Origin: Selaginella moellendorffii
Lineage: Eukaryota; Plantae; Lycopodiophyta
Direction of reading: 5' to 3'
NCBI RefSeq assembly: GCF_000143415.4
Contig: NW_003314289.1
Span: 1,730,293 to 1,794,292 of the forward strand
DNA: 64,000 nt
The first letter of the stretch is position 1; every line of letters begins with the position of its first letter. Below, one piece after another: positions 8,094 through 53,110 of the stretch. The notes beneath the pieces are model-generated. The model made no database searches and was not told where the DNA came from. It worked only from the letters and a program-made list of their open reading frames with translations. Made by a program: the position numbers and the translations under genes.

Positions 8094-9659
8094 ATGGCAA
8101 GTTCATATCCAAAGGACAAGATTGCATTCCTGTACATCCACAGAGAGAGTGGTGAGATTGGCTTCGTCTCACAATCTGCGTCCAGGCATGTCCCAGTACT
8201 AGCAGCAAAGTGTGATTTCTTGTTCTCCTCCATGGTCGCGAGTGACAAGGCGGAAGATTTAGAGGCTGCTAAGCAGGCCACACGCTCAGTTGCTCCAGAG
8301 ATGAACAAGTACACCATTTCCATGCTTGGAGCAGCAGCTGACCAGGAGTGGACAGCCACCGTCTACGAGAGATACATTGGGAACGGGTTCGAGGGCGTGG
8401 TTTTCATCCAGGATCCCAATCTCCAGGAGGAGGACAGCGAGAGCATGAGCTATCTGGCCTCTCTGCTGCTGGACAACGGCGTCATGACCAGAGATTGCCT
8501 TCTGGAGCCCTCCAGCTCGCACACACCTCAAGAGGTGGACGACATCACCTCCCAAGTTGTGGACATCATCGAGAAGAATTACATCCACTTCCCAAAGCAC
8601 GACCAGTGGTTCACAAGTGGGGGCAAGCAGAGGTTTGCGGACAAGGTGAGGTACCACGTCGCAAGAAACATTCCACTCGAGTTCGTCTTGCCCGCATTTC
8701 CAGTCAAGTCGTGCAATCCCGACAAGACTCTGGGAAAGTGCCCGGACAAGGCCGAGGAGCTGGCCATCCATTCCATGAAGATTGTTGCGGATCTCATCAA
8801 GGCCGTGTATGCTCCAGGCGTGCACTACAACGTCGCCTCGGATGGCCATGTCTTCTCTGATCTCGTCGGCTCGGACGACGCTGCTGTGGATTCTTACGGC
8901 GAGATGTTTTGGGAGATGGCACACAATCTGTATCCCGGCCTTGTCAATTTCTTTCGCCTGGATGAGTTTCTGCTGGACAACCACAGTGACAAAGACATTG
9001 CAAAGCTTATCTCCAACACCACCGTGGAGCATCCCGTTGCGACTGAGCTCACCGCCAATGCAGAGAATGCCAGGCGAGCTCTCATGTGCTTGTTTGGATG
9101 TGACGAGTCAACCGTCACCAAGGAGATCAAGGAGGACCCGGAGACACGCAATCTATATCGTGGCTTCTCCAGGTTCATGCTCGAGGACTTGTACGAACAC
9201 AAGAGCTGCAAGAATCTCCCGTCAAAGTCGGCCAAGAAGAAGCTGTGCAGCCAGGTTGCCTTCCTCATGATCCTCAGGAACCGTGCATACTCGGCCATGG
9301 TGGAGTGGCTCTTCCCTTTGCAGCTGCGCATTTCCATCCACCCGCATCCAAACAGAGGTCCCAAGTATGGCATCAACATCATCCATTCCTCTCTAGTGGC
9401 AGCGCAGCGTTCTTCCGAGGAGAAGAACTTCCACATCCCAACACCATGGCACAACGCGGTGGTGGAGCTGGCAGATGGCAAGTTCATGCTGCTGCACTCC
9501 AAAGTCATCCGAGGTTCGAGTATGCAGGCCACAGAAATGGCCTGTGAGCAGCTCGAGTTGAGTCAACAGTTGGTTCTCAAGCGTCAAGGCTACAGAATGA
9601 CGCTGGTGACATATCCAGACGGCAGACCCAGCCACTACAGGCAGGTCAGTGTCTGCTAA
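8094..9659 (+). CDS. Isocyanide synthase, DIT1/PvcA family (Dit1-like), copy 1, intronless, 521 aa
   Basis: Family motifs occur in the canonical order: FVLPAFPVKSCNPDKTLGKCPDKAEELA, SDGHVFSDLVG, LYRGFSRFMLEDL, VAFLMILRNRAYSAMV, LRISIHPHPNRGPKYGI, HIPTPWHNAVV. Confidence 0.93.
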   Translation: MASSYPKDKIAFLYIHRESGEIGFVSQSASRHVPVLAAKCDFLFSSMVASDKAEDLEAAKQATRSVAPEMNKYTISMLGAAADQEWTATVYERYIGNGFEGVVFIQDPNLQEEDSESMSYLASLLLDNGVMTRDCLLEPSSSHTPQEVDDITSQVVDIIEKNYIHFPKHDQWFTSGGKQRFADKVRYHVARNIPLEFVLPAFPVKSCNPDKTLGKCPDKAEELAIHSMKIVADLIKAVYAPGVHYNVASDGHVFSDLVGSDDAAVDSYGEMFWEMAHNLYPGLVNFFRLDEFLLDNHSDKDIAKLISNTTVEHPVATELTANAENARRALMCLFGCDESTVTKEIKEDPETRNLYRGFSRFMLEDLYEHKSCKNLPSKSAKKKLCSQVAFLMILRNRAYSAMVEWLFPLQLRISIHPHPNRGPKYGINIIHSSLVAAQRSSEEKNFHIPTPWHNAVVELADGKFMLLHSKVIRGSSMQATEMACEQLELSQQLVLKRQGYRMTLVTYPDGRPSHYRQVSVC

Positions 9660-12429
9660 TATGTGATAGACGGTTTTGATTCTGGGTAAATTCCCTCAGG
9701 CCCATTTTTTTGTAAATTTTAAAAAGAGTAAATACCATTTTCTCTCTCACTTCTTTGTCTCCATCTGGAATTCTAAAAATGAACCGTACAAACAGAAGAA
9801 ATAGAGAACATATTGTTGACTGTATAGTGCTTCCTCTGTTACTACAAATATATGAATACCATTACAGCAGTATAGGGGTCACTACTAACTTTGACAATCT
9901 TTTACTTCCGCTCCTTCTCTGGATCAATGTTGTGAAGAAGAAGCCCTGGATTGAAAATTCCTCAATACCGACACTATTCACCGCCTAAGTTTTACGCTGT
10001 GTATATTTCAGTCCAATTTTGTAAGCGGCTCAAGCTGCACAACACGTTACATGCTTCGCTCCAGCGTAGGCCATCCTGTCTCCATAAGGACGAGACGTGG
10101 TCTTTGGCAACTTGAGAACTTTAGGATGTGTTTGACAAGCCTTCTTTTTGAAACAAAGGTTTTTGCAGGACAATGTCATACGTCATCTATAGTCAAGTGG
10201 AATTTGTGGTCAAAGAATGTTTGCTACTCGTTTTGCGTTATACGGTATTTATGCATCATTTTAAACACGTGTTTTAAGAGCAGGAAAGCAGCAAGAAGCT
10301 ACCTGTTTTCTTTATGCAAAGTCTCAACCGTCTGATATATAAAATGTAACTATGGTTCTTGTCAGAATTAGATGGCCTGACTTTCTATGGCAAGTTTGGA
10401 TTCACATCAGATTCTCTTCTTTTTATGGAGCTTGCTTCCCTGGTATTTGTTTTCTTCTTTGTTGACTTACATAGTTCAAGTATACATTACCATGGTAAAG
10501 GAGTTCCAGTGCAAACTATCAGAGCGAGATATGTACTGTAGGCCCGTGCTTTGCCACCATTGCCTCCATCATACCAGTGCTTCACCCTTGCATTCAGCTC
10601 CATCGTTGTACAACTCAGACCACTCGCTAACCAAAATTCGAATGACTGCATACTAGGTAAAGTCATGCCGCTGCCAATGGCTAACCTGTTCATTCTTTTT
10701 CTTGGCCGTACATCATGTACCTCCTCATGATTAACAATTTTATTCATAAACATTCACATGGTTTTGTTTGTGTGGCTTATATTAAATTACTATGAATATA
10801 CCTTGAAAGCAACCTGGGGGTTGTAACGTATGGCTGTGCTAAACACCCATGACTGGATTTCCATGGAAATAGCAGACATTTTGTGTCATCAAGATGCCAG
10901 GTATGTGAAGCACTCAATGTGGAATCAAAAGTCAAGTGGGGCTTCCCAGGGACATGAGGAGTGGCCTCGTTTGCATTGAGGACTGGGGCCCCCAGTATGC
11001 TTGACCTCATGCCACAGACAACACTCTCAATGCTGTTGGAGAAAAACTTTTGTCCTTCTGCTATGCAGTATAGGAATGTCAGTGGCCTGGACACACACTG
11101 GGAGGCTACACTTGTGAGGCATGGATCCTTGCAAGGCTTACATGGTCTCATACTGTGTGCTGCCTCAGAAACTCTGGATGAGGAGCTCAGCGCGGCCTAG
11201 ATCAGGGTGCAAGGATTCTCAATGTGAGCGGTGTTATTGCTGAGATCTTAGGCAATTGCACTGCATACAATGGCAAATCCAGCGTGAGCTGGAGTGGACT
11301 TGCTGCAAGCTGCAGCTCGTCTCACTGCAGGCTCCAGCTTTGGAGAGCTGCCTCCTGCGAGCTGCACCGCTCGGGGCAGGAGTGCTGTGCCTTCACAGAG
11401 ATTCATGCGTGTGGCTACAAGCTCTAGTAGATCCAACAATGAGGTATCCTTGGAACATGGCCTATGTCCACACGCCAGCTCCACTCAAACTTCTAGCACC
11501 ACCCAAGAGCTGTCTTGAGATGGGACCAGTTCCCCAGGACCCTTGGAGTGAGAGAGATTTCCCTGCCAACCAAGGGGTTTCCCACCACCTCTCTACCTAT
11601 GCAAAACAGAAGAAATTCATCTACCCTTTGGCAGAAAAACATGTATTATTATTCATTATACTATTTATAACATTATAATATCCAAACAACAGATCCCTGA
11701 GAAGAATGTGAAGCCACTAGCAACTGCAGGATTCTGGAGCCAACTCTCCTTCTTGTGGCTGAATCCACTGCTCAACTTTGGCCATTCCAGGCTGCTAGAG
11801 CTCCAAAACATCCTCAATCTTCCACTAGAGTATAGATTAGATTTTAGAGTAAAGGTGTAATAATATATATGTGAGTGTGTGGAATATGAAAATAGAATAT
11901 AGAAATATGCATATCAATTAACCCAAAAACACTAATTTAAATATAATAGCGGGTGGTCAAGATTGAAACCAATCTAATGGATATCAAAATCCCAATATGT
12001 TAATAATAGTATATGGCATTGTAGTTGTACATTTGGACTTCAAAGCATTGCCTCCTTTTAGAAGGATAGAAGACAGTTAAAGTCTTTTGGTGGATGGGCC
12101 GGGATTTAGAAGAATATCAAAAGCAAGCATTTATGGATCTATAAGTGGTGTCAATTGTTCTTGATCCCTTTGTACAAAGCATTTTAATCGCTGCATATAC
12201 ATAATTTTTAAAGGATCAACTTGTTTAACGTTATGTTGAACCTTATAAACTTGTAACACCTGATATGGTCCTTTCTATTAAGTAAGGAGCGCTTTAGATA
12301 AACTGTATACTGTAAGATTGGAAATAGATTAACACCAAAACATCCACTTTGTAATTTATAGATGGATGATGATGGGAGTTATAGCACCGTTATTGTTCCA
12401 TTTATATGTGGCTCAAATGTTTGGTAGAC

Positions 12430-13968
12430 TCTGCTCAGACTAGTGGAAGAATGCTCATCAAATACTGATCTTAAGATATAATATCAACAGTTCGTGGCAA
12501 TTGCGAAAGTAAACTCAACTTTGTTAACAATATCATATCATGACCATATAAAAGTTTATATAGTGAAAACTTAATAGAACTTTGCACCACTGTAATATAT
12601 GCATACCAAAAGGATAGCAAATAACCATCTCAATTCGAATGTTAAAAGTTCATGTATTTTGCAATTATCTTTTTGAAGGTTTGTATAAGTTGTTCCACCA
12701 AACCATTTGACTATGGATGATAAACACTTGTAAATAGGTGGCATATCCCCAACCAAGATATTAAAACATAAAATGCTTAATCTATAAATGCAAGACTATT
12801 ATTCAGAGAACCTAGAATGGCAAAGTTCAACCTAGCTCAAGCCTCTATCATTGTCTCCCACAAGATCCACATCCAGGCGATAGTAGAGATCTCCAAAAGA
12901 ATCCACTCCGGACAATAATGCTGAAACACTATTCGATTGAGGAAGAAGTATTTAACAACAATTGCAAACACACTAGTAAAAGCACCAACTTCACCTAGTG
13001 AGGTAAGTAGTCAGAAGTAATATTAACATACTTATTGCTAATAGTCAAATGTGGAAAAGGCCCTATCAAGTTAAACGCCACTAACTTAAATGGACAAAAA
13101 ATTACAATTGACTCTAATTGTCCTTCTATAACACGAAGGGTAGTATTATGAGTTTAGTACCAAATACAACTACACATATATTAGATAACATTATGTCACA
13201 TATCTAACTAATAGAAAAACTTGTGCAACTTCTTAGTCATACAACGATGTTCTATATGCCCACATAGAATAAGAAAATCATGGTACATATGAAAAAAGTG
13301 TGGAATAATGATTAAAGGCACCACCAGCTGTAAATGATTATCAGAATCCGTCTTTACAAAATTAAAAAGGTCATTTTTAAGGTGATTTTAAGAATGTAAA
13401 TGCTAACATAGCAAGTTATTAGCAAGTGATATAAAATTTTTAAACTTATTGTGAAGCCTTTAGATCAACAGTTTAATCTTTTGAGCCTCACGAACCTTGT
13501 CAAGAGAAGGTAACTCTAGCTCCGCACTTTATGGACACTAAACATCAAGTACAACAAATGCTAATAGCATTGAATCCTTATCCAAAAAATTTACAAATGC
13601 TAGAATAATAAACTTATAAAAATATGAGAAGTGAAAAAGGAATAGGAGCTTAGGAAAGGGCATTAACATTAGTCATAAAACTCCTTGGGTGATGAAAATA
13701 TCAAAATCATATATCTGAAGCTTTAATGCCCACAAAGCAGTATGACCAACCAATAACAAAGTAATTGCGATATGATCATTTTGTAATAATGTCCAAGAAC
13801 TATATAGATATGTATAAAGTTTCTTGAAACCCCAAACTATTGTTAAACACTCTTTTTTTATTGTAGAGTAGTTCATCTCCACTAGTTGTAATGTACGGTT
13901 GATATATACAATAAAATGGTATTGACTAGGCACACTTAAGCTTTCTTGCATCAACATACCTTTAAAAC
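12430..13968 (-). mobile_element. Heavily decayed Ty3/gypsy pol fragment (RNase H-integrase), old family
   Basis: Minus-strand remnants such as YINRTLQLVEMNYSTIKKECLTIVWGFKKLYTYL...WALKLQIYDFDI, with many stops. Homologous to 60650-62770. Confidence 0.75.
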
Positions 13969-15263
13969 CTTGCGTCCTTATTACTTGCTCTTACGTGCAT
14001 TGAGGATGCCTTCAACTTCGTTTTTTTTTTTCCCTTAGATAACCTCAGCTAAAGGTTTTATTTGGTCCTTGCGAAATGGATCCTTAAAGTATAGCTTGAG
14101 TAAGTTCATGTGGAACACAAGGTGCATCTTCCCCATCTCCCGAGGAAGTCGAAGGCGATAAGCTGCCTTACCAATTCGAGCCTCAATATCATAAGACCCC
14201 ACGAACCTGTTTAAAGAACTCAAGATCAATTCATTTCCAAAAATGCATGCATTTTACCTTTGGGTCAACTTCTACCTAATCCCACTTGATAACCTTAGGT
14301 TCTTGGTATTTAGCCACACTTTATCCCTAGGTTAAAACTCTACATCTAGGTGCTTTTGATTCACATATTTAATTTACATTTGTTGAGTCCGTTCTAAGGA
14401 ATCCCTCACTAAATTCTAAATGTTGAGTCTTTCTACTGTGAACGCCTCCACTACAGGTAACTCTCCATGATACTCAGCCATATTGAATTTCACAGGACCT
14501 TCAATAACTCGCCCATTGATGACTTCTCATGGACTCACCCCAATACTCGAATGTGGTGAGCTATTATAGCACATTTTTGCAAGTCCCAAATGACTTACCC
14601 AATCAATTTGGTTTCCAAAGACATACCATCGCAAATAATCCTCCAGCTACCTATTTACACTTTCTATTTTTTCATCTGTCAAGAAGTGTTAGTGCCATCA
14701 AACTTGACTTAATACCCATTACCTGTCTGTGGATGATAGACTATGCTAAATTTCAACTTGGTGCGATATTGTTTTAGGAGAGTTCTTTAGAACCTACTGG
14801 TGAAGATCTTATCTAGATTTGAGATAATCTCTTTTGGCCTTCTTTGCACTTGAACCACTTGTTTAAAGAACAACTTCACCACACTTTCTACATCCACTTC
14901 TGTTGTGATGGGTATGCCATTTTCAAAAATCAATCAATCACTACGAATATTGCATCAAACCTCTCATTTGAGGGGAGTTCTGTGATGAAGTCCATTATAA
15001 GATATTTCACAAACGATCTAGAATTATGAGGCTTTGTAATAAGCTCTCACTAGCCTTAGTCACGGCTTGACCACTGACATATTAGACATCNNNNNNNNNN
15101 NNNNNNNNNNNNNNNNNNNNNNNNNNNNNNNNNNNNNNNNNNNNNNNNNNNNNNNNNNNNNNNNNNNNNNNNNNNNNNNNNNNNNNNNNNATCTTTAGCC
15201 ATATTTAGCTAGTGATACTTCCTCTTAAGTAAGCCCATCGTTTTGGGCACTCCACCATATCCT
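13969..15263 (-). mobile_element. Decayed chromovirus-type gypsy integrase/chromodomain fragment (spans the 100-N gap)
   Basis: RFVGSYDIEARIGKAAYRLRLP...HLVFHMNLLKLY. Near-identical to 28009-29224 and homologous to 48000-49200. Confidence 0.8.
15091..15190. other. Assembly gap (100 N)
   Basis: A run of exactly 100 N. The paralogous position (29130-29151) has only ~20 bp, so the gap size is a placeholder. Confidence 0.95.
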
Positions 15264-15496
15264 GGTCATAGTCTATGGACCAAATGAGAGATGATGTTGA
15301 CAAGTTCAACAATACTCACAACAGGTTTTGTATAATAAAAAAAATGATCAATGAAACAACTAAGATATTGCATCTTGCCTAAAAAGGGTTGCACATCATT
15401 CACACACTTTAGAGTAAGGAACTTAAGAATAACTACAAATTTTTCAAGATCAACTTGCAAACCTTCACGAGAAATACAGTACCCAAGATAAGTAGT

Positions 15497-15890
15497 TGTG
15501 AGACACAAAATCCCTAGGCCCCAAAGTGGAGCTGAAAGGGCACAACGTGGTAGTGGCCGAAGCGAAAGCTAAATGAGCATAACACGTTTGGACTAAAAGC
15601 TCTGACTTGAAAAGGTTGAGAGTTGGAGTGGAACTCCCAACAAAGTGCTCGAGGAACAAGCACGAGGCGAGCCATGAGTGAGTCTCTAGAAAAGGGGACA
15701 CAAGAGGACCAAAACATGACACGTGGAAGTGTCCAAGATGGAGTCTGAGGTGGAGTCTAAGGTGGAGTCCGAGATGGAGTCCGAGGTGGAGTCCGAGGTG
15801 GACCCGAGATGGAGTTCGAGATAGACCTGAGATGGAGTCTGAGATGGAGTCCGAGATGGACCCAAAATGGAATCCGAGATGGAGTCCGAG
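15497..15890. repeat. LTR-like fragment ending in a (GAGATGGAGTCC)n-type tandem array; copy at 29457-29850
   Basis: Begins TGTGAGACAC and is homologous to 16795-17250. It replaces ~0.5 kb of RT that is still present in the inverted paralog (59790-60310). Confidence 0.55.
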
Positions 15891-16794
15891 AATTTATATA
15901 TAAAATTTTGATTTGATTGGTGATCAATGATAAGTAGGAACTATGATTGGACAAACATCTCCAATGGAATAAAATGATGTGTTGCAATCTTAGCCCCAGA
16001 CGATAAATCAAATTCAAAGAGATTAGCATACTCCTTCATGAGTCGGTCAACCACTACAACACAAAAATCATTGAAGGGATCTAAAGAGGGAATAAAGGAA
16101 CAAAATAGAAACATAAGAGGAAATAATGAAGCGACAAAAGTGATAAAGGCAAAAGGACAAAAAAGAACAGAAATGAGAGGAATACAAAAAATATAAGGAA
16201 GTATAAGACAATAGGAAAAGTAGTAAAGTCACATTTGACATGATTGTGCTGTAACCAATCCATATAAAGGATGAGGGCAAAAACTTGACTCAGCAGCACC
16301 CGCAACAACTACAGTTTAAGCTCGAGATCTCCCACACGCATAACTAAGTCTACCTTATTCCATGGACATGCATATGTACAACTGTTGTCATAAAGAATGA
16401 AAACTAACTCTGCCACATGACATAAATGTAGATAGCAACATGTGACCATAAACTAAGCAATAGAAGATAAACTCAAGCTTATATTAACTAATATAGATAG
16501 AATAATATGAGACATCTTATTATAAAAATGAGCTTGGAAAGTAAATACTGGATGAGCTTGTGCCAAATAAACCCCTTGATAATACTCTCGAAAAAAAAAT
16601 GGAAGGGTCACAGATTTATTCACACAAGGACCCTCTACTACTTGTATGACTCCTTGTTTCTCAAAAACATCTTGGTGTCCTGACCTTCCACTGCAGCAGC
16701 ACCAACAGGTTGTTGTTAACGCCAGGGTTTCCACCCAGAAAATAAAGGTTGCTAATCCGAAAAATGCTAACATGACCAATTTCATCACATGTTT

Positions 16795-18300
16795 ATGAGA
16801 CACAAATCCCTAAGCCCCAAAGTGTCACAAATACCTAATCCCCAAAGTGGAGCCGAAAGGGTGCCACATGGTAGTGGCCAAAGCAGAAGCCACGAGCATA
16901 ACACATTTGGGACTAAAAGCTCTGACTTGGACAGTCGAAAGTGGGAGTGGAAATACCAATGAAGTGCTCGAGAAACGAGCATGAAGCAAGCAGTAAGTGA
17001 GTCTCTAGGAAAGGGATACAAAAGGACCAATACATGACACATGGAAGTGTTAAAATGTAGTCTAAAATGGACCCGAGACGGAGTTTGAGATGAAGTCCAA
17101 GATGGAGTCTGAGAAGAAGTTTGAGATAAACCCAAGATGGAGTTTGATATGGACCTGAGATGGAGTCTAATATGGACCTAAAAGGGACTTGAGATGGAGT
17201 CTAAGATGGACCTAAGATGGATCCAAGATGGACCTAAGATGGAACCGAGATGGAGTTCGAGGTCGAGTCTGAGATGGACTTGAGAGAGAGTCTAAGGTTG
17301 AGGTTGAGAAAGAGATTGAGACCGAGACTAAGAAAGAGACCGAGACCGAGACCGAGATCGAGATTGAGATTGAGACTGAGACCGAGATCAAAACCAAAAT
17401 CGAAACCGAAACCAAGACCAAGTCTGAGTCTAAGTCCAAGTTTGAGTCCGAGGGTGAAAGCCCAAAGCATTCATCTCCTAAACCCTAAGGGGTTTGGTGA
17501 GCTCCAAAAGTATAGTAAGGGGAGGATTTTAATGGAACTAGTTTAGCTAGGAAAGGTTAGTGTGACCAAGGAAGGTTATACCCATGTGTTGGGTGATGAT
17601 ATATCCACTAAAGCTTGAGTGAATACAGATAGACAAGCAGGGTAGTTTGGTGAAATGTTCAAAAACCGGCTTTAGCTCCCTTGGGAGATCAAATGGTCAA
17701 TACTCTCAATCCAGGTTTGAGTGGCATTACCTATTTAGATACCTAGTGTGGCTTATTAAAACCTCACTCTAGCCACATGGTTAGGCACCTAAGGGTGAAA
17801 GGTGGGGAGAGTACCTATGAAGCTTGTGTAAGGTTGCGGTGTTTCGAAATATTGTCTTAAAGTCAAAGACTATAGAAAGGAAGAGGAGCAATAGTGACTA
17901 AAGACACGATCACATGGTGAAGAAGTCCCAAAGAACAGTGGGATTTAGTGGTTAGGCTTTTGATCCTTGACATACTGATGGGGTTGATGAGCATAGCCCT
18001 GGATGAAAAAGCACTTGGTAGGGACAAAAGAAGGGATATTGGGGAAGGGTGTTTCACATGTTTCTGAGCATCTTAAGGGTGCTAAAGTGTGGTCAAAGGA
18101 TGACCATTCATGGATGGATGGCTTAATCTTTGAGAGATAAGATTGTGATGTAGGTGATCTTGGATTACTGATATGATAAAGGTGAATGGGTATGGCCTTA
18201 GTATAATAAGTGGATATATCAATAGTACCTTTGGGTGTTAGTTATGAGATCAGAAATATATACTACTTAAACCAAGTGCAAAGGTTAAATGCCATATATA
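16795..18300. mobile_element. Probable LTR-like element of a third family with degenerate 6/12-mer arrays (copies 30755-32260 and inverted 56800-58290)
   Basis: TGTGAGA-like terminus and GAGATGGAGTCC/GAGACC arrays at 17060-17450. No coding capacity. Right boundary uncertain. Confidence 0.4.
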
Positions 18301-18986
18301 CCATTCACGAGGCTAGCATATCCCCAAGTCCTAAATAAGACTTATGGAGGTTGTGAGTGAGACTCCTCCAAATAGTTAAAGGTGTGGTTAAATGATTAAA
18401 GTAGAATGGAAAAATTAATCACTTATAATGCCTAGCAGCAGACATCATGACCATGACCATATCCTTGCCTTTGTCTATAAACTCGGGAAGTAATAGCATC
18501 ACTATTAAAATAGAACCATTTCCCATAGAAAGAGAAGAAGAAGTGATGCACTATAACATTGTGCCAAGCAAAGAGTATTATTTGGCTCTACATAAAGCAA
18601 GAAGCTCGAAAATAAATGCTAAATTGCATCATTAACTTAGATGGTCCTTGATGAAGACAAACCAATTGTTAAAATACATCATCATAATCATCGACATGTT
18701 CAAATATGCATTTCAAAATGTTTAGGAAAATGCTCCAATCTACATGTGTGTTGTTGATTTTTGGGATGATATTCAGCATTTACGTGAGTTTCCCACATAT
18801 CTCCAATGGACAGTGTTGCAATAATATAATGATTTGAGCACCAAAAGATGATTGCTATCTTCATTGGGAAGTGTATGATTGCCAGAATATAAAGAATATT
18901 AGTGGGCAATGCATCAAAGTAATTAAACCTCCAAGGATTAGACCATTCTCTAGTACAAAAATTTTAGATGAAATAGTTAGCATCTG

Positions 18987-19577
18987 TCTCTCTGCAGTTG
19001 CAATCATGCAACGCTTTTTTGAGTGCCAAGAGGCCTGCCTGTTGACCAGTTTGACTCCAAGGAAGATCTGATGAACACATTGCTTACATTGTGTTTCAGA
19101 GCAGTTTGCTCTTGCATTCCGTTCAGATGGGAGCTTGACTGGTTTTTAGTTATCTAGCACCACAATCTGTTACCGTCTTTAACAACAGACTGTGCATCGA
19201 CGGCAGGTTCACGCTCTTCATGCCCCCTTCAGCTGCTGAAACAACAGTTCTTTTGTGTCACTCACTAAGATTTTAGTTTTGGCTTTTGAAGCTTTCGTTT
19301 TGCTTTTACACGGGTAAGAGTATGTGCCTTTTCTGCCAAGCACCTCGGTCTGCAAGACACAGTGGGTATCAGCCCGGACTGTAATCCCGACAACCGAGCC
19401 TCTCCAAATAATAAGAAGTTAAAAGGTACATACCTAAGTTCTTGCAGCTTTTAAACTGCCGGCTGGAGATGCAGTATTAGATGAGCTCTATTTGTTGGCT
19501 ACAAGGATGCTGCAGTGTGGGAAAATACAAATCCTTTGATCAATTTTAAAGGCAAGGCAGCAGCTGCTCCAGTTTGA
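18987..19577 (+). pseudogene. 3' fragment of the patatin gene co-duplicated with ICS copy 2
   Basis: Homologous to 7071-7691, with frameshifts, deletions (e.g. loss of GGGCTTTAGAA in the last exon) and damaged splice sites. Confidence 0.9.
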
Positions 19578-19980
19578 AGATGCAACAAACGATTGCTGTA
19601 TCATACTAGAGGCATTCATGCGAAGGCAAGAAAGGAAATATAGAGATTCTTTGGGACACCATTCTCTAGAGACTAGCATTTGTACACAAAAAGTTCCTTG
19701 TTCTACATGGTTGTGAAAAGAATCAAACGTTGTCAAAAGAAACAAACAAGAAACTACGTGTGAAGCTTCATGGTCAGTTGTGTGACTTTGTCAATCGCGT
19801 TCTATTTTCCCAGCCCACGTTTGAGAATTTTCCAGTCAAGCGCGTAGGTACCGGGAAGGCGGGCGGCTTCCTGGTATAAAAGCCCAACCAGGGAAACCCA
19901 GACAATTCATCGATCCCAGTCTGCAATCTTCCATCCTCTAGCCTGAAATTTGAGATTTTCTCTTTTTCTTCATAACACCC

Positions 19981-29000: not shown

Positions 29001-29224
29001 CTCTCATTTGAGGGGAGTCCTGTGATGAAGTCCATTATAAGATATTTCATAAACGATCTAGAATTATGAGGCTTTGTAATAAGCTCTCACTAGCCTTAGT
29101 CACGGCTTTGACCTACTGACATATTAGACATGTCTTTACATAATCCTAGATATCTTTAGCCATATTTAGCTAGTGATACTTCCTCTTAAGTAAGCCCATC
29201 GTTTTGGGCACTCCACCATATCCT
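26093..29224 (-). mobile_element. Truncated duplicate of the Cassandra/chromovirus composite element
   Basis: Cassandra LTR and internal domain (26093-26489), chromovirus LTR from 26490, then 3' region, chromodomain and integrase. Equals 40053-43184 at offset 13,960. Confidence 0.8.
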
Positions 29225-33537: not shown

Positions 33538-33940
33538 AGATGCAACAAACGATTGCTGTATCATACTAGAGGCATTCATGCGAAGGCAAGAAAGGAAATA
33601 TAGAGATTCTTTGGGACACCATTCTCTAGAGACTAGCATTTGTACACAAAAAGTTCCTTGTTCTACATGGTTGTGAAAAGAATCAAACGTTGTCAAAAGA
33701 AACAAACAAGAAACTGCGTGTGAAGCTTCATGGTCAGTTGTGTGACTTTGTCAATCGCGTTCTATTTTCCCAGCCCACGTTTGAGAATTTTCCAGTCAAG
33801 CGCGTAGGTACCGGGAAGGCGGGCGGCTTCCTGGTATAAAAGCCCAACCAGGGAAACCCAGACAATTCATCGATCCCAGTCTGCAATCTTCCATCCTCTA
33901 GCCTGAAATTTGAGATTTTCTCTTTTTCTTCATAACACCC

Positions 33941-43000: not shown

Positions 43001-45771
43001 GATATTTCACAAACGATCTAGAATTATGAGGCTTTGTAATAAGCTCTCACTAGCCTTAGTCACGGCTTTGACCTACTGACATATTAGACATGTCTTTATA
43101 TAATCCTAGATATCTTTAGCCATATTTAGCTAGTGATACTTCCTCTTAAGTAAGCCCATCGTTTTGGGCACTCCACCATATCCTACAAGAAGCTCATCAT
43201 GACACTCTTCTAAAGCTACCTTAACTCCCTTTGTGGAACATACACCCTCATCTATTTATAATAAATGAGTCCATTGCATTCTACATAACCTGTCTTCTTT
43301 TCTGTAGGTGGCTCCCCTCTTTGGTGAGCATCCTGCACTTCTTGGTTCCTTAGCAACACTTCTTATGCTAGACCATTGTTCTCATACGTTATCGATACAT
43401 CATCCTAAAATGTTGCTATCACATTGGATATCGCAAACTTCAAGTTTACCTTTTGACTTAAAGCATCTGCCATGATGTTGCTCTTCCTAGGTTTATACAA
43501 AATCTTACAATCAAACTCGGCCAAAGCATTAGCCCACTGACCCTATTTCCCTCTTATATCGGGCTGTAATAAGAAGTGTTTCATTGCTACATTATCCGTG
43601 TAAACTTTGAAGTGTCTCCCAAGATAGTGTCGCCACTCCTTGAGTGCATTGACCACCCCAAACAGTTCCTTCTCATGGGCATGCCATTTTCATTGAGCTT
43701 TGTTCAACTTTTTCGAGAAGAATGATACTGGGTGGTTGTCTTGCTTCAAAACTATGCCCTAGCATTTGTCCTCCTCAAAGGGAAGTTGAGAAAGGCTCCC
43801 ATGTTAGTGTTACTAAACTTTGGTAAGAACTTTAAGGTATAAATAAATGCTTCAGAATTTGCATTGGGCATAGTACTTCACATTCTACTGTTTATACTAT
43901 CTTCTTTTTTTCTGTTTGGTTCGTTAAAGGCAAGGCTACCCTCATATAGTGTTTGATAAACTTTTGTTAGTAGTTGTATAGCCTCAAGAATGCCCTTACC
44001 TCATGTACATTTGATGGTTGTTCTCATTCCTAGAGCTACCACAAATCAATTGAACCAATCCATCCGGAAGATCACTTTAAATTTTGCTATATCCAACACA
44101 GTAAAATTCATGTCTACTTTCCATGTCCCTACTTCGATTCTTGCTTGTCGAAGTACCTTATTGGTGTTTTGGTTATCTTAAATAAACTCTATAGTCATTT
44201 GTTCACCCAACCACAGCACTGTTAGTCTAACTTGCCAGACTATATTTGCAACCACAAAATTATCTGAAGCACCCATGTCAATAAGGATCTTAACAAAGAT
44301 ACCTTTGAGCTTCCCTCAAAGGGTTACTAGATATTGTGATTGACTCTCTACCAAAATTGCTCGCATAATGAGTCACTTTGAGATAGGGATTAAATCACAT
44401 ACCTTAATTTGAATTTCACCTTATTTAATGGTTATATTGACTCTGGCCTTTTTCAGTTAGGGACATTCCTTCGAAAAGTGTTCCACTTCACCATAGTTGA
44501 AATGTATATTGTTTCCCATGCTATTAGTAGACTTGACCTTTTTATCAATGGGTTTGTCCCTTTTCGCTTGACTCCCTCATATACTTGTTTGTTGGCCACT
44601 GGATCTACCTTTCCAAAACCCTAAAAACTTATTTTTCGAGAAACTTTTTTTTGAATCTCCCTTTGCTATATATCCCCTTTGGTTTAGCTCTTTTGCTAAA
44701 TGTGGACCTCAACCCAGTTGTGTTCCCCTTTCGTAGGTTATTATTAAAATGCACCTTAATAGCTACATCTAATACTTCCTTGTAGTTAGTCGGGTTTTAA
44801 TGCATCACCTCGTCTCGAGCCTAGGTCTACAAGATTGATATGAAGGTATGGAACACATCCATATTGCCCATATTTGTGATAAGGATCCTTTTCGCCATGA
44901 ATGCATTCACATACTCTTGAATGGTTCTCATTTGCTTCAGCTTACTCAGCTCATTCCTTAGGTACAAAGTAGCATTCAGAGGAACATAGATTGCACAAAT
45001 CCTCGCCTTCATTATTTTTGAAGTGGCCACCAATCCTTCATTAGCCTTTGTTGTTCTCCACTAAGACTTAGCATTATCTGCCAAGTATGGTTTAGTACAT
45101 GAGACTTTCTCCAAACTTGGTAACCACAATGTTTAGAAATAATCTTCTATATTGTAAAATCAATCCTCCACCACCTTATAGTCATTCACTCCCTTGAAGA
45201 CTAGTGAGAGTTTTGGTTTGTACTTAGGAACTACTTGAGGGATTGATTCCACTTCAATTTGTTCGACCTTATTCGATTTGGCCTTAGTCCACTCCAAAAG
45301 GTCCATGCCTTTTGCATTGCTAGCCTTTGTAGTCTTTTACTTTTTCTTATGCTTCTTGTCACACTTTAGCTTGCGTATGAGAGTCTCTAGTAGGGCATTT
45401 GTTTGTACCAATTTTCCTTCTAGAATGTCCAATCAAGCCTTGGACAATTAAACCTCTCCATCAGACTCTTGTTTGGAAGATTCCTCATCTTGTGCAAGGA
45501 TTCCTTATCCATAGCTTTTAGTTCAACTAGTTCCGCTTCTATCCTTTGCTAGAATTGAGGAAAAGACTTTGATACCAAATTATAAGCTCCTAAATTTGAA
45601 CTTCCCAAAAGTCACCCAACCCAGTACTATTCAAACCCAAAAACGCTTAATCCCAAGTATCTTAAAACTTTTAACCAATTAAAAACAGTGGGCACTCTTA
45701 TTTATAGGCTTTTTTTCTTTATATTTGAACTGATGGACTATATCTCAAGTTATTCTTTTTGGTTGTTTACA
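40053..45771 (-). mobile_element. Composite retroelement: Cassandra LTR - PBS - chromovirus gag/PR/RH/INT/chromodomain - chromovirus LTR - PBS - Cassandra internal - Cassandra LTR
   Basis: 5S-bearing LTRs at 45581-45771 and 40053-40245. Perfect 5-bp TSD ACCTA at 40048-40052 and 45772-45776. Met-tRNA-type PBS next to 45581 and next to 40450. Decayed gag (ORF 44827-45033), protease, RNase H, integrase and chromodomain remnants. Confidence 0.85.
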
Positions 45772-46494
45772 ACCTAAGCCACATATAAATGGGACAATAA
45801 TGACGCTACAACTTTTATCATCCATCATCCACCTGCAGATTACAAAATGGATGTTTTAGTGTTAGTCTATTTTCCCAATCTTACAGTACATAGTTTATTT
45901 AAAGGGCTCTTTGCTCAATGGAAAGGACTTTATCGGGTGTTGTGGCAAGTTAGACTATAAGTTTATAAAGTTTGGCATGACATCGAACAAGTTAATCCTC
46001 CAAATATTATACATGTGCAATAATTAAACGCTTCGTACAAGGGATCAAGAATAATTAGCAACACCTACAGATCCATGAATTTTGATATTCTCTTAATATT
46101 CTAAATCCCAGCCCATTCACCACGAAAACCCTGATTGTCTTCCATCAAGAGGTGGCAGTCCAAGTGTACGGTGACAATGCTATATACTATTATTAGTGTA
46201 TTATGATTTTGATAATTGTTGAATTAGTTTTAATCTGGACCACTCACTCTTTTATATAAGCTAGTGTTTTTGGGATAATTGATATGCACATTTTTATTTT
46301 CCATTTCATATTCCATGCACTCAACATATAATATTATTACACCTTTAATTTAAAATTTAATTTAAATCATTAAGTGGTACTCCAGTGGAAGATCGGGGAT
46401 ATCCTAAAGCTCCAGTAGCCTGGAATGGCCAAAGTTGAGCAGTGGATTCAGCCATGAGAAGGAGAGCTGGCTCAAGAATCCTACAATTGCTTTC

Positions 46495-49400
46495 TGGAGA
46501 ACGACAGAGGCCAATGAAGGACCAGTGGCCACTTGGGACATGATGAAGGCAAGGATCCGCATGACTTACGTTCCTCCGAATGCTACTCTGCATCTAAGAG
46601 ACGAGCTGAGTAGGCTGAAGCAAACCGGAACCATTCAGGAGTATGTGAATGGGTTTATGGCAAAGAGGATACTTGTCACGGACATGGGGGATATGGATGC
46701 ATTCCATGCCTTCATATCGGGCTTGCAAACCTGTGCTCACGGCGAGGTGATGCATTGGAACCCGAACAATTACAAAGAAGTGTTGGATGCGGCTATCAAG
46801 GTGCATTTTAACGATAACCTGCGAAAGGGGAACATGACGGGGTCGGGGTCCACGTTTAGGAAAGGGGCCAAACCAAGGGGAACATATAGCAAAGGGAAAT
46901 TCAAGAAAAGTTTCTTTAAGAATGAGTTCTCGGGGTTCCCGAAAGGCAAATCTAGTGGCCAGCGAGCAAATATGTGGGGGAGTCAAGCAAAAAGAGACAA
47001 ACCCATGGATAAGAAGGTCAAGTCATTTAGTAGCGTGGGAAACAACATATGCTACAACTGCAGTGAAGCGGGACACTTTTCAAGGGAATGTCCCTACCCA
47101 AAGAAGGCCAGAGTCAATATGGCCATTAAGTCAGGTGAAGTCCAAATTGAGATATGTGATCTAGTCCCTAGCTCAAAATTACTCATTACATAAGCAACTT
47201 TGGTAGAGAGTCGTTCGCGACATCTACTAGCCCTCCAAGGGAAGCTCGGAGATAACTTTATTAAGATCCTTATTGACACGGGTGCTCTGGATAATTTTGT
47301 GGCTGCAGACATAATCTGGCAAGTCGAACTAACGGTGTAGCAGCTGGGTGAACCAAGGACTATATAGTTTGTTCAAGGTAGCCAAAGCACCGATGAGGTA
47401 CTTCGACAAGTGAGAGTCGAAGTAGGGACTTGGAAAGTAGACATGGATTTCACCATGTTGGACATGGCGGGATTTGATGTGATCTTCGGGATGGATTGGT
47501 TCAATCGATTCGTGGTAGCTCTACATGGACAAGGTAGGAACCTTGTGGTACTAGCGAATGCCCAAGGAAGAAGATCTAGGGTGGAGGCCCAGGATCTAAA
47601 GGTAGGGCAATGCAAGGCCAAAGATTCGTACCTAAACCTGGTGTCCACGAGAGGACAACTCACTAAAGGGACCAAGGCTGCATTTTTGTGCTTACTCTCG
47701 GTGAGGAGTGACAAAAAGATAGGAACGGAAGAAGTACCTTTAGTGATCCAGCAGGTGTTGGACCAATTCCAGGATACTATGCTAGAGGAGCTACCGGTGG
47801 GGTTGCCCCCCGCACAACCGATAGAGCATAAGATTGAGCTGGTCGAGGGTGCTGAGGCGGTGGTTCATCCCCCCTATCGTTTGAACGAAAAAGAACTCAC
47901 GGAGCTCAAGCGCTAACTAGAGGAGTTGGTGGACAAAGGGTATGTTAGGTTAAGCAAGTCCCCTTAAAAGAGTGTCATGACAAACTTTTTGCGGGACACG
48001 GTGGAGTGCCCAAGACAATGGGCTTACTCAAGAGGAAGTACCACTGGCCAGATATGGCTAAGGACGTCCAAGACTATGTAAAGACATGTCTAACATGTCA
48101 GCAGGTCAAAGCCATGACTAAGGCTAATGGGGGCTTGTTACAAAGCATCCCAATTCTAGATCGTCCGTGGAAATGTTTTACGATGGACTTCATCACGGGA
48201 CTCCTCTTAAGCAAGGGGTTCAATGCGATATTCGTGGTGGTGGATTGATTTTCGAAGATGGCACATTTCATACCCACCACAACGGAAGTGGATGCGGAAG
48301 GTGTGGCAAAGCTGTTCTTTGAACAAGTGGTTTGAGTGCAGGGAAGGCCAGAAAAGATTATCCCAGATCGAGATAAGATCTTCACTAATAAGTTTTGGAG
48401 AACACTCTTGGAACAATATTGCACCAAGTTGAAATTCAGCATAGCCTATCACCCATAGACAGATAATGGGTATTAAGTCAAGTTTGATGGCACTAACACT
48501 TCTTGACAGACGGGCAAACGGAAAGGGTGAATAGGTAGCTAGAGGATTATTTGCGATGTTATGTCTCGGGAGACCAAACTGATTGGGTAAGTCATTTGGG
48601 ACTTGCAAAAATGTGTTATAACAACTCACCACATTCGAGTATCGGGGTGAGTCCATAGGAAGTTATCAATGGGCGAGCTATTGAAGGTCCTGTGGAACTC
48701 GGCGTGGCCAACTATCATGGAGAGTTACCTGCAGTGGAGGCATTCACGGCGGAAAAACTCAACATTTGGAATCTAGTGAGGGATTCCTTAGAACGGGCTC
48801 AACAAAGGCAAACCAAGTACGCGAACCAGAAGTGTCGGGATGTAGAGTTCCAAGTTGGGGAGAAGGTATGACTGAACACCAAGAACCTCAGGCTACCAAG
48901 TGGGATCAGCCGGAAGTTGACCCAAAGGTAAAAATGCATGTATTCCTGTAAATGAATTGATCTTGAGTTCCTTACGCAAGTTTGCAGGGCCTTATGAGAT
49001 TGAGGCTTGAATCGGTAAAGTGGCTTACCGTCTCCGACTTCCTTGAGAGATGGGGAAGATGCACCCCGTGTTCCACGTGAACTTACTCAAGCCATATTTT
49101 GAGGATCCGCTTCGCAAGGACCAAGTAAGACCTTTACCTGAGGTTATCCAAGGGGAAGAGGAATACGAAGTCGAAGCCATCCTCAATGCGCGCAAGAGCA
49201 AGCGACAAGAACGCAAAGTGAGAAAGTTCCATGTGAAGTGGAAAGGATTTCCACACTACAAAGTAACATGGGAACCAGAAGAGAACCTAGCAAACGCGCA
49301 AGATCTAGTGGAGGAATTTCTGCAAGGCAGAACTCTATGTACTTATGCAAAGTTCAATTAAAGTATCAATTTGTGAAGTTGAGCAATGGCATATGTTGAG

Positions 49401-50375
49401 ACCCAAAGGCGCGCCGAAAGTAAGCTAATTAGCATGGGTTAGCTAGGTCAACCAAGTGTAGGGAACTATGCCCGACTCCCTACGGGGATATCAAATCCGT
49501 AGACGTATTCTACGGAGGTTGGGTTCGAGTCCCAACCCCGTAGTAAAGCAAGGCTGGGTTCAAGTCCCGACCCCATACTAGGCCGTGGTGAGGTGAGGAG
49601 TATAGGGACACCTATATTCTGTTGTCATGGGCTCTTGGCCGGGGAGGCTAACTTAGGCACACCGCTAAATGGGGGGATGCCCCCAGAGACATGGTCAACA
49701 AGTCATAGGATAAAAAAGAGACGTTCGATGTGGGCATCGAACTTCTTCTATGGGTGGTGGAGTTGTAAGGAACCAATTCACCAAGGTGTCGTAGGCTAAA
49801 GGATCCCCGAAAGCATGACCAAAATGACAAAGAGTTCATCGGATGGGACCAAGTCGAAGATCGAGTCCAAGACTGACTCTAAGACAGAGTCTGGGATCGA
49901 GTCCGAGGCCAAATCGGAGAACGAGTTCAAGACCGAGTTCAAGACCGAGTTCGAGACAGAGTCCGAGATCCAAATCAGGTCCAAGACCGAGTCCAAGGTC
50001 GAGTCCAAAGTCGAGTCCGAGATCGGGTCTGAGATCGAGTCCGAGATCAAGTCCGAGACCGAGTCCGAAGTCGGATCTGAGATCAAGTTCGAGACCGAGT
50101 CTGAGTACTTGGCTGCTTGTGTTTGCGGGGAGTGTAGCCGAACCTTAAGTCCAGTCTAACCCAGAGAGGGGGATTGAGAGAAATTTGGGAATCCGTGGAT
50201 GGATGGCTAACGCTCTGTTGCTCGTGCAGTGAGTAGCTGAAACCAAGTAGGACCAAGTAAAAGCTGGTACCATAGGCGAGAATCTTGGTGAGGGAATTTA
50301 GCAAAAGTCAATGCAATGTTGGACGGATAGACGAGGTAAACTGGCAAATTGGAAAGGAAAAATTTGTGGCTTACA
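46495..50375 (+). mobile_element. Chromovirus-type Ty3/gypsy element, 3' part (gag C-terminus, protease, integrase, chromodomain, 3' LTR remnant); RT/RNase H deleted
   Basis: Zinc knuckle CYNCSEAGHFSREC; protease LIDTGA; jump from the RT start (..SKSP) to the integrase HHCC at ~47965; MDFITGL; chromodomain EYEVEAIL...FHVKWKGFPHYKVTWEPEENL; LTR ends GGCTTACA at 50375. Confidence 0.9.
49850..50105 (+). repeat. Degenerate hexamer array (GAGTCC/GAGACC/GAGATC)n in the element's 3' region
   Basis: Visible 6/12-bp periodicity. Related arrays at 27245-27380, 41205-41340 and 57660-58030. Confidence 0.85.
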
Positions 50376-50692: not shown

Positions 50693-51142
50693 ATGGGAGC
50701 TTGACTGGTTTTTAGTTATCTAGCACCACAATCTGTTACCATCTTTAACAACAGATTGTGCATCGACGGCAGGTTCACACTCTTCATGCCCCTTTCAGTT
50801 GCTGAAACAACAGTTCTTTCGTGTCACTCACTAAGATTTTAGTTTTGGCTTTTGAAGCTTTTGTTTTGCTTTTACACGGGTAAGAGTATGTGCCTTTTCT
50901 GCCAAGCACCTCGGTTTGCAAGACACAGTGGGTATCAGCCCGGACTGTAATCCCGACAACCGAGCCTCTCCAAATAATAAGAAGTTAAAAGGTACATACC
51001 TAAGTTCTTGCAGCTTTTAAACTGCCGGCTGGAGATGCAGTATTAGATGAGCTCTATGTGTTGGCTACAAGGATGCTGCAGTGTGGGAAAATACAAATCC
51101 TTGATCAATTTTAAAGGCAAGGCAGCAGCTGCTCCAGTTTGA
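50693..51142 (+). pseudogene. Shorter 3' patatin fragment upstream of ICS copy 4
   Basis: Homologous to 7219-7691. Shares lesions with the copy 2/3 fragments. Confidence 0.88.
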
Positions 51143-51544
51143 AGATGCAACAAACGATTGCTGTATCATACTAGAGGCATTCATGCGAAGGCAAGAAAGG
51201 AAATATAGAGATTCTTTGGGACACCATTCTCTAGAGACTAGCATTTGTACACAAAAGTTCCTTGTTCTACATGGTTGTGAAAAGAATCAAACGTTGTCAA
51301 AAGAAACAAACAAGAAACTACGTGTGAAGCTTCATGGTCAGTTGTGTGACTTTGTCAATCGCGTTCTATTTTCCCAGCCCACGTTTGAGAATTTTCCAGT
51401 CAAGCGCGTAGGTACCGGGAAGGCGGGCGGCTTCCTGGTATAAAAGCCCAACCAGGGAAACCCAGACAATTCATCGATCCCAGTCTGCAATCTTCCATCC
51501 TCTAGCCTGAAATTTGAGATTTTCTCTTTTTCTTCATAACACCC

Positions 51545-53110
51545 ATGGCAAGTTCATATCCAAAGGACAAGATTGCATTCCTGTACATCCACAGAGAGAG
51601 TGGTGAGATTGGCTTCGTCTCACAATCTGCGTCCAGGCATGTCCCAGTACTAGCAGCAAAGTGTGATTTCTTGTTCTCCTCCATGGTCGCGAGTGACAAG
51701 GCGGAAGATTTAGAGGCGGCTAAGCAGGCCACACGCTCAGTTGCTCCAGAGATGAACAAGTACACCATTTCCATGCTTGGAGCAGCAGCTGACCAGGAGT
51801 GGACAGCCACCGTCTACGAGAGATACATTGGGAGCGGGTTCGAGGGCGTGGTTTTCATCCAGGATCCCAATCTCCAGGAGGAGGACAGCGAGAGCATGAG
51901 CTATCTGGCCTCTCTGCTGCTGGACAACGGCGTCATGACCAGAGATTGCCTTCTGGAGCCCTTCAGCTCGCACACACCTCAAGAGGTGGACGACATCACC
52001 TCCCAAGTTGTGGACATCATCGAGAAGAATTACATCCACTTCCCAAAGCACGACCAGTGGTTCACAAGTGGGGGCAAGCAGAGGTTTGCGGACAAGGTGA
52101 GGTACCACGTCGCAAGAAACATTCCACTCGAGTTCGTCTTGCCCGCATTTCCAGTCAAGTCGTGCAATCCCGACAAGACTCTGGGAAAGTGCCCGGACAA
52201 GGCCGAGGAGCTGGCCATCCATTCCATGAAGATTGTTGCGGATCTCATCAAGGCCGTGTATGCTCCAGGCGTGCACTACAACGTCGCCTCGGATGGCCAT
52301 GTCTTCTCTGATCTCGTCGGCTCGGACGACGCTGCTGTGGATTCTTACGGCGAGATGTTTTGGGAGATGGCACACAATCTGTATCCCGGCCTTGTCAATT
52401 TCTTTCGCCTGGATGAGTTTCTGCTGGACAACCACAGTGACAAAGACATTGCAAAGCTTATCTCCAACACCACCGTGGAGCATCCCGTTGCGACTGAGCT
52501 CACCGCCAATGCAGAGAATGCCAGGCGAGCTCTCATGTGCTTGTTTGGATGTGACGAGTCAACCGTCACCAAGGAGATCAAGGAGGACCCGGAGACACGC
52601 AATCTATATCGTGGCTTCTCCAGGTTCATGCTCGAGGACTTGTACGAACACAAGAGCTGCAAGAATCTCCCGTCAAAGTCGGCCAAGAAGAAGCTGTGCA
52701 GCCAGGTTGCCTTCCTCATGATCCTCAGGAACCGTGCATACTCGGCCATGGTGGAGTGGCTCTTCCCTTTGCAGCTGCGCATTTCCATCCACCCGCATCC
52801 AAACAGAGGTCCCAAGTATGGCATCAACATCATCCATTCCTCTCTAGTGGCAGCGCAGCGTTCTTCCGAGGAGAAGAACTTCCACATCCCAACACCATGG
52901 CACAACGCGGTGGTGGAGCTGGCAGATGGCAAGTTCATGCTGCTGCACTCCAAAGTCATCCGAGGTTCGAGTATGCAGGCCACAGAAATGGCCTGTGAGC
53001 AGCTCGAGTTGAGTCAACAGTTGGTTCTCAAGCGTCAAGGCTACAGAATGACGCTGGTGACATATCCAGACGGCAGACCCAGCCACTACAGGCAGGTCAG
53101 TGTCTGCTAA
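51545..53110 (+). CDS. Isocyanide synthase, DIT1/PvcA family, copy 4 (521 aa; N97S and S140F vs copy 1)
   Basis: Intact ORF; catalytic-domain motifs unchanged. Confidence 0.93.
   Translation: MASSYPKDKIAFLYIHRESGEIGFVSQSASRHVPVLAAKCDFLFSSMVASDKAEDLEAAKQATRSVAPEMNKYTISMLGAAADQEWTATVYERYIGSGFEGVVFIQDPNLQEEDSESMSYLASLLLDNGVMTRDCLLEPFSSHTPQEVDDITSQVVDIIEKNYIHFPKHDQWFTSGGKQRFADKVRYHVARNIPLEFVLPAFPVKSCNPDKTLGKCPDKAEELAIHSMKIVADLIKAVYAPGVHYNVASDGHVFSDLVGSDDAAVDSYGEMFWEMAHNLYPGLVNFFRLDEFLLDNHSDKDIAKLISNTTVEHPVATELTANAENARRALMCLFGCDESTVTKEIKEDPETRNLYRGFSRFMLEDLYEHKSCKNLPSKSAKKKLCSQVAFLMILRNRAYSAMVEWLFPLQLRISIHPHPNRGPKYGINIIHSSLVAAQRSSEEKNFHIPTPWHNAVVELADGKFMLLHSKVIRGSSMQATEMACEQLELSQQLVLKRQGYRMTLVTYPDGRPSHYRQVSVC

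Follow-up and report, generated by a model that had tools for sequence, protein, structure and literature searches.

Probable concerted evolution of four DIT1/PvcA-family genes in the lycophyte Selaginella moellendorffii

Non-allelic gene conversion is known from gene arrays such as ribosomal DNA and the plant RBCS genes, and the concerted evolution of small arrays is textbook knowledge. In tandem and segmental duplicates of this kind, the paralogues of an array resemble each other more closely than their flanks do, the flanks are mosaic, and the homogenised tracts take in non-coding DNA. Here we describe the same features in a 64,000-nucleotide stretch of Selaginella moellendorffii nuclear DNA (the window, which lies on a scaffold of 1,968,525 bp). 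It carries four near-identical genes of the DIT1/PvcA family, which are predicted to encode isocyanide synthase (ICS)-type enzymes. Concerted evolution of these four copies is strongly supported. The array departs from the usual picture in having four copies only, irregularly spaced (11.9, 14.0, and 17.6 kb) with retrotransposons interleaved, and in that a functional gene lies directly at one of the tract ends.

The closest described relatives of the encoded proteins are Dit1 of Saccharomyces, together with the dit1-type isocyanide synthases of other fungi, and the bacterial enzymes PvcA and PIsnA. Whether yeast Dit1 forms formyl-tyrosine or an isocyanide is disputed (PMC7345447, PMC10153163). 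The Selaginella proteins belong to the same Pfam family as the fungal ones (PF05141), carry the family-invariant residues, and have the same two-part architecture, an N-terminal extension of ~180 amino acids followed by a PvcA-like domain. However, their host is a vascular plant, and identity amounts to ~30–40% with yeast and ascomycetes and to 35–45% with chytrids. With bacterial PvcA (3E59) and PIsnA (9DH4, 9DHM), they share the fold and the conserved motif regions LPAFPxKS, SDGHVF, RxSIHP, and TPWH (HMMER-aligned), but identity is ~25% and the bacterial enzymes lack the N-terminal domain. The gene neighbourhood also differs from the fungal dit1/dit2 and bacterial pvcA/pvcB pairs. Neither a Dit2-type cytochrome P450 nor, adjacent to the ICS genes, a PvcB-type iron/2-oxoglutarate-dependent dioxygenase was found among 47 sampled non-ICS open reading frames (ORFs) of the window (at least 30 amino acids long, a sample that short exons could escape).

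Horizontal gene transfers from fungi to plants have been reported for early land plants. The genes described here resemble those cases in being fungal-type and intronless among plant genes, in their occurrence in a lycophyte only, and in their later expansion; they differ in that direction and donor are here drawn from an unrooted, midpoint-drawn tree.

A homogenised core between diverged flanks

The four genes lie on the forward strand at 8094–9659 (copy 1), 19981–21546 (copy 2), 33941–35506 (copy 3), and 51545–53110 (copy 4). An earlier note, made from the sequence alone, had described them as four intact ORFs of 1,566 bp with four variable sites, and both statements were borne out: ORF calls give four products of 521 amino acids, and a four-way DNA alignment finds exactly four differences in the coding sequence, one synonymous and three non-synonymous. 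In copy-1 coordinates, and with the letters given for copies 1/2/3/4, these are 8267 (T/G/T/G; A58, synonymous), 8383 (A/A/A/G; N97S in copy 4), 8436 (A/G/G/A; S115G in copies 2 and 3), and 8512 (C/C/C/T; S140F in copy 4). Copies 2 and 3 encode one and the same protein, and copy 4 is distinguished by S97 and F140. All four sites precede the Pfam DIT1_PvcA domain (residues 185–476), in agreement with the earlier placement N-terminal to the catalytic domain, and their 3:1 ratio of non-synonymous to synonymous differences is about the neutral one. The overlapping alternative-frame ORFs, also remarked on before, are indeed identical, simply because the DNA is identical.

Divergence was measured over the region common to the four copies (copy-1 coordinates 7219–11006). 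Within this region lies a core of ~2.5 kb (copy 1 7742–10228, with equivalents at 19628–22115, 33588–36075, and 51193–53667, all on the forward strand) in which divergence is 0.08–0.28% in six of six pairs. The core takes in 352 bp 5′ of the ATG and 569 bp 3′ of the stop codon, and these non-coding parts are as uniform as the coding sequence. In the upstream part (7219–7741), copy 1 differs from the others by 9.2–10.2%, or by ~5% without a replaced 27-bp block, and copy 4 differs from copy 2 by 1.8%. In the downstream part (10229–11006), copy 4 differs from the others by 3.4–3.9% plus several indels, and copy 1 from copy 2 by 1.2%. Farther upstream, the junction flank (copy-2 coordinates 18641–18986) is 83.8% identical between copies 2 and 4 and 94% identical between copy 2 and an inverted stub.

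When core and flank are compared by Fisher tests, P ranges from 4e-12 to 3e-31, and the longest identical runs, of 1,447–1,532 bp, were equalled in 0 of 20,000 random placements. Over the ~342 synonymous sites of the coding sequence, flank rates predict 12–55 synonymous differences, and at most one is observed (P from 1e-4 to 1e-22); constraint on the coding sequence therefore cannot account for the uniformity of the core. The formal alignment asked whether flanks and coding sequence are equally diverged, and they are not: the core figures stand against 1.2–16% in the flanks. The earlier view that the duplications are not all recent holds as well, as the co-duplicated flanks differ by ~1% between copies 2 and 3 and by 3–16% between the others.

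One piece of the earlier evidence has to be given up. The “original flank” of copy 4 had been judged 80–85% identical to its counterpart beside copy 1. In the alignment, 11719–12413 and 46491–45777 match in opposite orientation; the 734 aligned columns are 75.1% identical and include 15 gap openings. The stretch beside copy 4 leads directly into a retrotransposon gag/zinc-knuckle ORF. The supposed flank is an inverted piece of a transposon and was not co-duplicated, so it provides no clock for the gene duplication and the argument built on this flank is invalid.

The flanks of the core are mosaic. The odd one out is copy 1 on the upstream side and copy 4 on the downstream side, so no single tree fits both. 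Within the coding sequence, all four allele combinations of sites 8267 and 8436 occur among the four copies. Longer tracts are seen in particular pairs. Copies 2 and 3 are held in a forward-strand tandem repeat with a period of 13,960 bp and 2.1 units (13967–43213), and the 14-kb units that contain them differ by 1.12% (118 substitutions in 14,716 comparable columns). However, 4,215 bp on the forward strand are without a single difference between the first unit (unit A, 20155–24369) and the second (unit B, 34115–38329), where 47.4 differences are expected (P = 2.7e-21). This tract begins within the coding sequence, after codon 58, and ends 2.8 kb 3′ of the stop codon; beyond the stop, it contains a long ORF without a Pfam match and degraded matches to other parts of the window. 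Among copies 2–4, dead patatin fragments upstream of the genes are 98–99.5% alike, whereas their junction flank is 84% identical. The homogenising process does not follow functional boundaries. The proposal that gene conversion homogenises the copies is supported by the contrast between core and flanks, the long identical runs, and the incongruent flanks, but promoter plus coding sequence is not the homogenised unit, as the tracts also span pseudogene and repeat-like non-coding DNA.

The anatomy of the duplications was read from self-BLAST and the four-way alignment. The whole shared unit extends over 7072–11198 in copy 1, 18987–23067 in copy 2, 32947–37027 in copy 3, and 50693–54421 in copy 4 (the equivalent of copy-1 7219–11006), always on the forward strand. 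Copies 2, 3, and 4 and the inverted stub at 55908–56097 (reverse strand) have one upstream junction sequence in common, which is absent from copy 1; they therefore go back to a single secondary copy. As copy 1 adjoins an apparently intact patatin-like gene, it marks the original position. The stub opens an inverted segmental copy (55908–64000, reverse strand) that is 88–93% identical to the spacer between copies 1 and 2 (11133–19178) and that sets a lower limit to the age of the copy-2-type junction. This inverted segment reaches the edge of the window at the point where an ICS unit would follow, so that a fifth ICS copy, in inverted orientation, may be present shortly after position 64000.

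The patatin sequences record the same history. The patatin-like gene beside copy 1 (6251–7691, forward strand) is spliced, with AG/GT exon borders and a DGG motif read from the alignment, and ends ~400 bp before the ATG of copy 1. The Pfam Patatin model matches 6251–6946 with E = 1.3e-4 and 22.7 bits, under the gathering score of 27.7, and 6950–7192 weakly; the other short patatin exons gave no significant Pfam match. A search of the window for further copies of the first exon (6251–6946) found none, and the homology of the other copies to copy 1 begins within a later exon, at position 7072. The last exon is 7551–7691, with the stop codon at 7689–7691. As had been noted before, the patatin pieces upstream of the ICS genes are broken, which is true of copies 2–4, where they are truncated and frameshifted. 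Fragments on the forward strand are at 18987–19577 (copy 2), 32947–33537 (copy 3), and 50693–51142 (copy 4); the inverted stub is a fifth. Compared with copy 1, copies 2–4 have 10-bp and 1-bp deletions within the last exon. The fragments beyond copy 1 also show a 13-bp deletion and a change of DGG to DGR in the presumed catalytic Asp motif, and a 9-bp deletion removes the GT splice donor in copies 2 and 3 and in the inverted stub; copy 4 lacks that exon. Separately, copy 1 and copies 2–4 disagree at 22 positions of a 27-bp block in a patatin intron (7518–7544 vs 19415–19441); inversion as the cause of this block was ruled out by eye.

A second array allows a comparison between haplotypes. The DIT1 gene models on a scaffold of 2,094,916 bp have best partners on the window scaffold that are 97.4–98.8% identical, and this scaffold is probably allelic, that is, the second haplotype of a two-haplotype assembly. 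Four of its models (EFJ25267, EFJ25268, EFJ25269, and EFJ25416) encode one identical protein of 391 amino acids, which differs from all window copies by D348E, T480R, E488D, and V494L and has F140 in common with copy 4. At the protein level, substitutions that run through one array and are absent from the other would fit the classical signature of concerted evolution. A further model on the sister scaffold combines N97, S115, and F140 with E69D (sister proteins P0136, P0004, and P0003). These sister-scaffold models seem to represent recombined sets of alleles on the second haplotype.

Proposed mechanism and alternative explanations

We consider it probable that the four genes are old, intronless DIT1/PvcA paralogues whose ~2.5-kb core has been overwritten by non-allelic conversion or unequal crossing-over. 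Copy 1 would stand at the original place, directly after the functional patatin-like gene. One secondary copy would have taken the 3′ part of the patatin gene along and given rise to copies 2, 3, and 4 and to the inverted stub, and the 13.96-kb tandem duplication would later have separated copies 2 and 3. Repeated non-allelic gene conversion, or unequal crossing-over, would have overwritten the core in all copies and longer tracts in particular pairs, with the tract ends set where indels or transposons break the homology. Copy-1-specific divergence stops at 7741, ~50 bp past the patatin stop, and the 5′ limit in copy 1 was probably imposed by selection against the loss of a working patatin gene to pseudogene sequence. 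Conversion may be able to continue partly because purifying selection on the enzyme limits divergence among the copies.

The earlier note went further, in that conversion together with selection for high enzyme dosage was thought to maintain four homogeneous units of promoter plus coding sequence. Such a reading would find room for several observations: four of four ORFs are intact over 521 codons, the probable allelic scaffold likewise has four identical models, the family has grown to at least ten genes on the window scaffold and is present at several other loci, and the all-copy core corresponds roughly to the gene with 350 bp on its 5′ side and 570 bp on its 3′ side. However, intact ORFs in copies that overwrite one another are not independent observations, and the surviving differences are three non-synonymous to one synonymous. 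In addition, the homogenised tracts also span the patatin pseudogene fragments of copies 2–4, and the tract shared by copies 2 and 3 begins inside the coding sequence and runs through 2.8 kb of non-coding, repeat-like DNA past the stop. Selection for enzyme dosage is thus not supported, and we regard the full dosage reading as unlikely.

Several points weigh against conversion of old paralogues as the explanation. The signal from the four allele combinations comes from just two sites, and 22 of the 46 copy-1 upstream substitutions lie in the single replaced 27-bp intron block. The comparison with the sister scaffold is at the protein level and on old 391-amino-acid gene models only, and the protein tree described below has no bacterial outgroup. 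The remaining points concern the assembly. The window contains three runs of N: an assembly gap of 100 N (15091–15190) that stands for ~20 bp, a run of 307 N (38498–38804) with exactly the length of the sister stretch 24538–24844, and a run of 134 N (40731–40864) with exactly the length of the sister stretch 26771–26904. Such exact matches to the sister unit are odd for estimated gaps, and it is possible that reads from near-identical copies and from two haplotypes were mixed into a consensus in this gapped two-haplotype draft.

If so, the near-identity of the core, and possibly the tandem repeat of copies 2 and 3 itself, would be an assembly artefact. Both haplotypes are present as separate scaffolds in the assembly, the divergence between copies 2 and 3 (1.1%) is near the allelic level, the two N runs in unit B equal the unit-A lengths, and a mixed consensus could yield the four-combination pattern. 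Against this, the three N runs all lie outside the ICS ORFs and the ~4-kb shared unit, and both sides of each gap are collinear with the sister repeat unit. Every copy lies in an ungapped contig with its own unique, diverged flanks (copy 1 in 1–15090, copies 2 and 3 together in 15191–38497, and copy 4 in 40865–64000), and the 2.5-kb core is short relative to these flanks. Where three units overlap (13967–15089, 28007–29131, and 41967–43091), they show 17–18 pairwise differences that are about equally unit-unique, a pattern that could not arise from two haplotypes. The 51 substitutions in the 9.3-kb stretch 15191–24537 comprise 44 transitions and 7 transversions, with 15 at CpG, and look like mutations, and the assembly did resolve differences between the arrays of the two scaffolds. 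An artefact of this kind seems improbable to us.

Very recent copying of the core to four places, with flanks of unrelated or transposon DNA, is highly improbable: the flank cited for copy 4 is indeed a transposon piece and much of the spacer DNA is retrotransposon-derived, but the sequence adjoining the core on both sides is homologous yet 1.2–10% diverged, the flank groupings conflict (copy 1 the outlier on one side, copy 4 on the other), copies 2–4 and the inverted stub share one upstream junction at 84–94% identity, and precise in-place replacement of an old homologous copy is gene conversion by definition. No target-site duplications or transposon ends bounding the core were seen in the four-way alignment, although no dedicated search for them was made.

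The protein family and its origin

The window protein belongs to the DIT1/PvcA family. It matches Pfam DIT1_PvcA with 278.6 bits against a gathering cut-off of 26.4, and a sequence search of the PDB retrieved the L-Tyr/L-Trp isonitrile synthase PIsnA (9DHM, 9DH4) with E ~2e-28 and PvcA (3E59) with E = 1e-25. An AlphaFold model built from a 26-sequence alignment reached a predicted local distance difference test score (pLDDT) of 82.5 and a predicted template modelling score (pTM) of 0.85. In Foldseek, this model matched 3E59, 9DH4, and 9DHM with E ~1e-20 and target-normalised template modelling scores (TM-scores) of 0.83–0.87. Across 26 plant and fungal sequences there are 24 invariant and 47 nearly invariant columns, and the window protein keeps the shared residue in all of them. 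In the model, residues 1–130 fold into a small domain rich in beta structure, a feature shared with fungal Dit1-type proteins, and the four variable sites are located in the N-terminal part or the linker. The NCBIfam equivalog model TyIsonSynPvcA (NF045653) gives 119.3 bits, below its cut-off of 600, and by this comparison the protein is a relative; it is no equivalog of bacterial PvcA. It is most likely an isocyanide-synthase-type enzyme, with a catalytic activity predicted from these similarities.

Relatives in S. moellendorffii carry the RefSeq label “spore wall maturation protein DIT1”. In exact look-ups of the ORF products, the protein of copies 2 and 3 and that of copy 4 correspond exactly to NCBI proteins of this species. 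The copy 1 protein (N97, S115, and S140) is absent from a collection of 15 billion proteins in which the other two are present, and the copy 1 gene may be unannotated in the public record. The ICS coding sequence has a G+C content of 54%, and 70% at third codon positions, close to that of the adjoining patatin exon.

The four genes are part of a larger, Selaginella-specific family that has its nearest relatives in chytrid fungi. The window scaffold carries at least six further DIT1 models, at 88–96% identity, which brings the family there to at least ten genes in all. In a word-index protein search, many more S. moellendorffii paralogues, 50–89% identical, came from at least nine scaffolds other than this one. 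The next-best matches were from the chytrids Blyttiomyces, Cladochytrium, Zopfochytrium, and Geranomyces (35–45%), followed by Ascomycota. Among the 120 best hits, S. moellendorffii was the sole named plant, in a search where few other lycophytes were sampled. A maximum-likelihood analysis of 66 sequences places the ten Selaginella proteins together in a single clade (support 100), with six chytrid proteins as its sister group (support 97), inside the diversity of fungal Dit1; the tree is midpoint-drawn and unrooted, and support is from the Shimodaira–Hasegawa-like approximate likelihood ratio test (SH-aLRT) only. From this sequence comparison, we infer that the genes were acquired long ago from an early-diverging fungus and multiplied afterwards. 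Copy 1 shares an ungapped stretch (1–15090) with exons of the patatin-like gene and of DEX1-like and eIF2A-like genes; a fungal-type gene that shares such a stretch with plant and eukaryotic genes is an integrated part of a plant chromosome rather than a contaminant.

The searched literature contained no paper that connects Selaginella with this family, which is no proof of novelty. Matches to “DIT1” in the literature concerned a plastid dicarboxylate transporter, and the mention of Selaginella in a survey of horizontal gene transfer in early-diverging fungi concerned a different gene.

Surroundings of the array and biological meaning

Upstream of the patatin-like gene, the forward strand carries DEX1-like exons (1396–3076), recognised by FG-GAP repeats and the DEX1 beta-sandwich, and eIF2A-like exons (3337–4593). 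The spliced genes (patatin-like, DEX1-like, and eIF2A-like) were searched exon by exon, and joined models were not built. DEX1 has a role in the formation of the exine of pollen and spores. A “spore wall” DIT1 gene stands near a DEX1-like exine gene, which is possibly a coincidence. The only domains found in the 47 sampled non-ICS ORFs were DEX1-like, eIF2A-like, patatin, and retrotransposon domains, and no tRNA genes were found in the window.

Retrotransposon remains take up much of the spacers between the ICS copies. A degraded long terminal repeat (LTR) retrotransposon of the chromovirus type occupies 45777–49400 on the forward strand, with gag and zf-CCHC at 46435–47193, protease at 47410–47916, and a chromodomain at 49047–49358; its 5′ part is the stretch earlier taken for the flank of copy 4. 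The downstream flank of copy 1 holds a retrotransposon RNase H piece on the reverse strand (13676–13990), and another degraded retrotransposon piece is found at 60488–60949 (forward strand). A block of 392 bp is 97–98% alike at 11312–11702 (3′ of copy 1), 54447–54838 (3′ of copy 4), and 63431–63821 (reverse strand, within the inverted segment), in surroundings that are much less alike; it could be a repeat of recent origin, or else conversion has acted on this tract too. Minisatellites with a 12-bp unit (GTCCGAGATGGA and variants) occur, on both strands, at 15731–15891, 29691–29851, 17075–17255, 49847–50105, and 57813–58038.

The mechanism that we propose for this array is of a known kind. What makes the array an unusually clean case is that old flanks, a shared junction, pseudogene passengers, and a probable allelic array separate the age of the duplications from the age of the homogenisation. 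One end of the converted tracts also appears to be policed by a functional neighbouring gene. For annotation, the identity of the copies is here no guide to their age, and their intact ORFs say little on selection.

More notable than the mechanism is that a lycophyte has a fungal-type DIT1/isocyanide synthase family at all, and that this family has expanded there. To our knowledge, an isonitrile or formyl group placed on tyrosine is chemistry not known from plant metabolism. As a tentative proposal, a chytrid-like fungal donor may have provided a family that now counts well over a dozen genes, with a converted array active on both haplotypes, and that makes a tyrosine-derived isonitrile or N-formyl compound in the plant. 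If the enzymes are active, this plant isonitrile/formyl chemistry would be directly testable. If the proposal as a whole is true, it would be the first PvcA-type isonitrile pathway in plants, apparently undescribed in the searched literature, and its product would perhaps serve in spore walls, metal binding, or defence.

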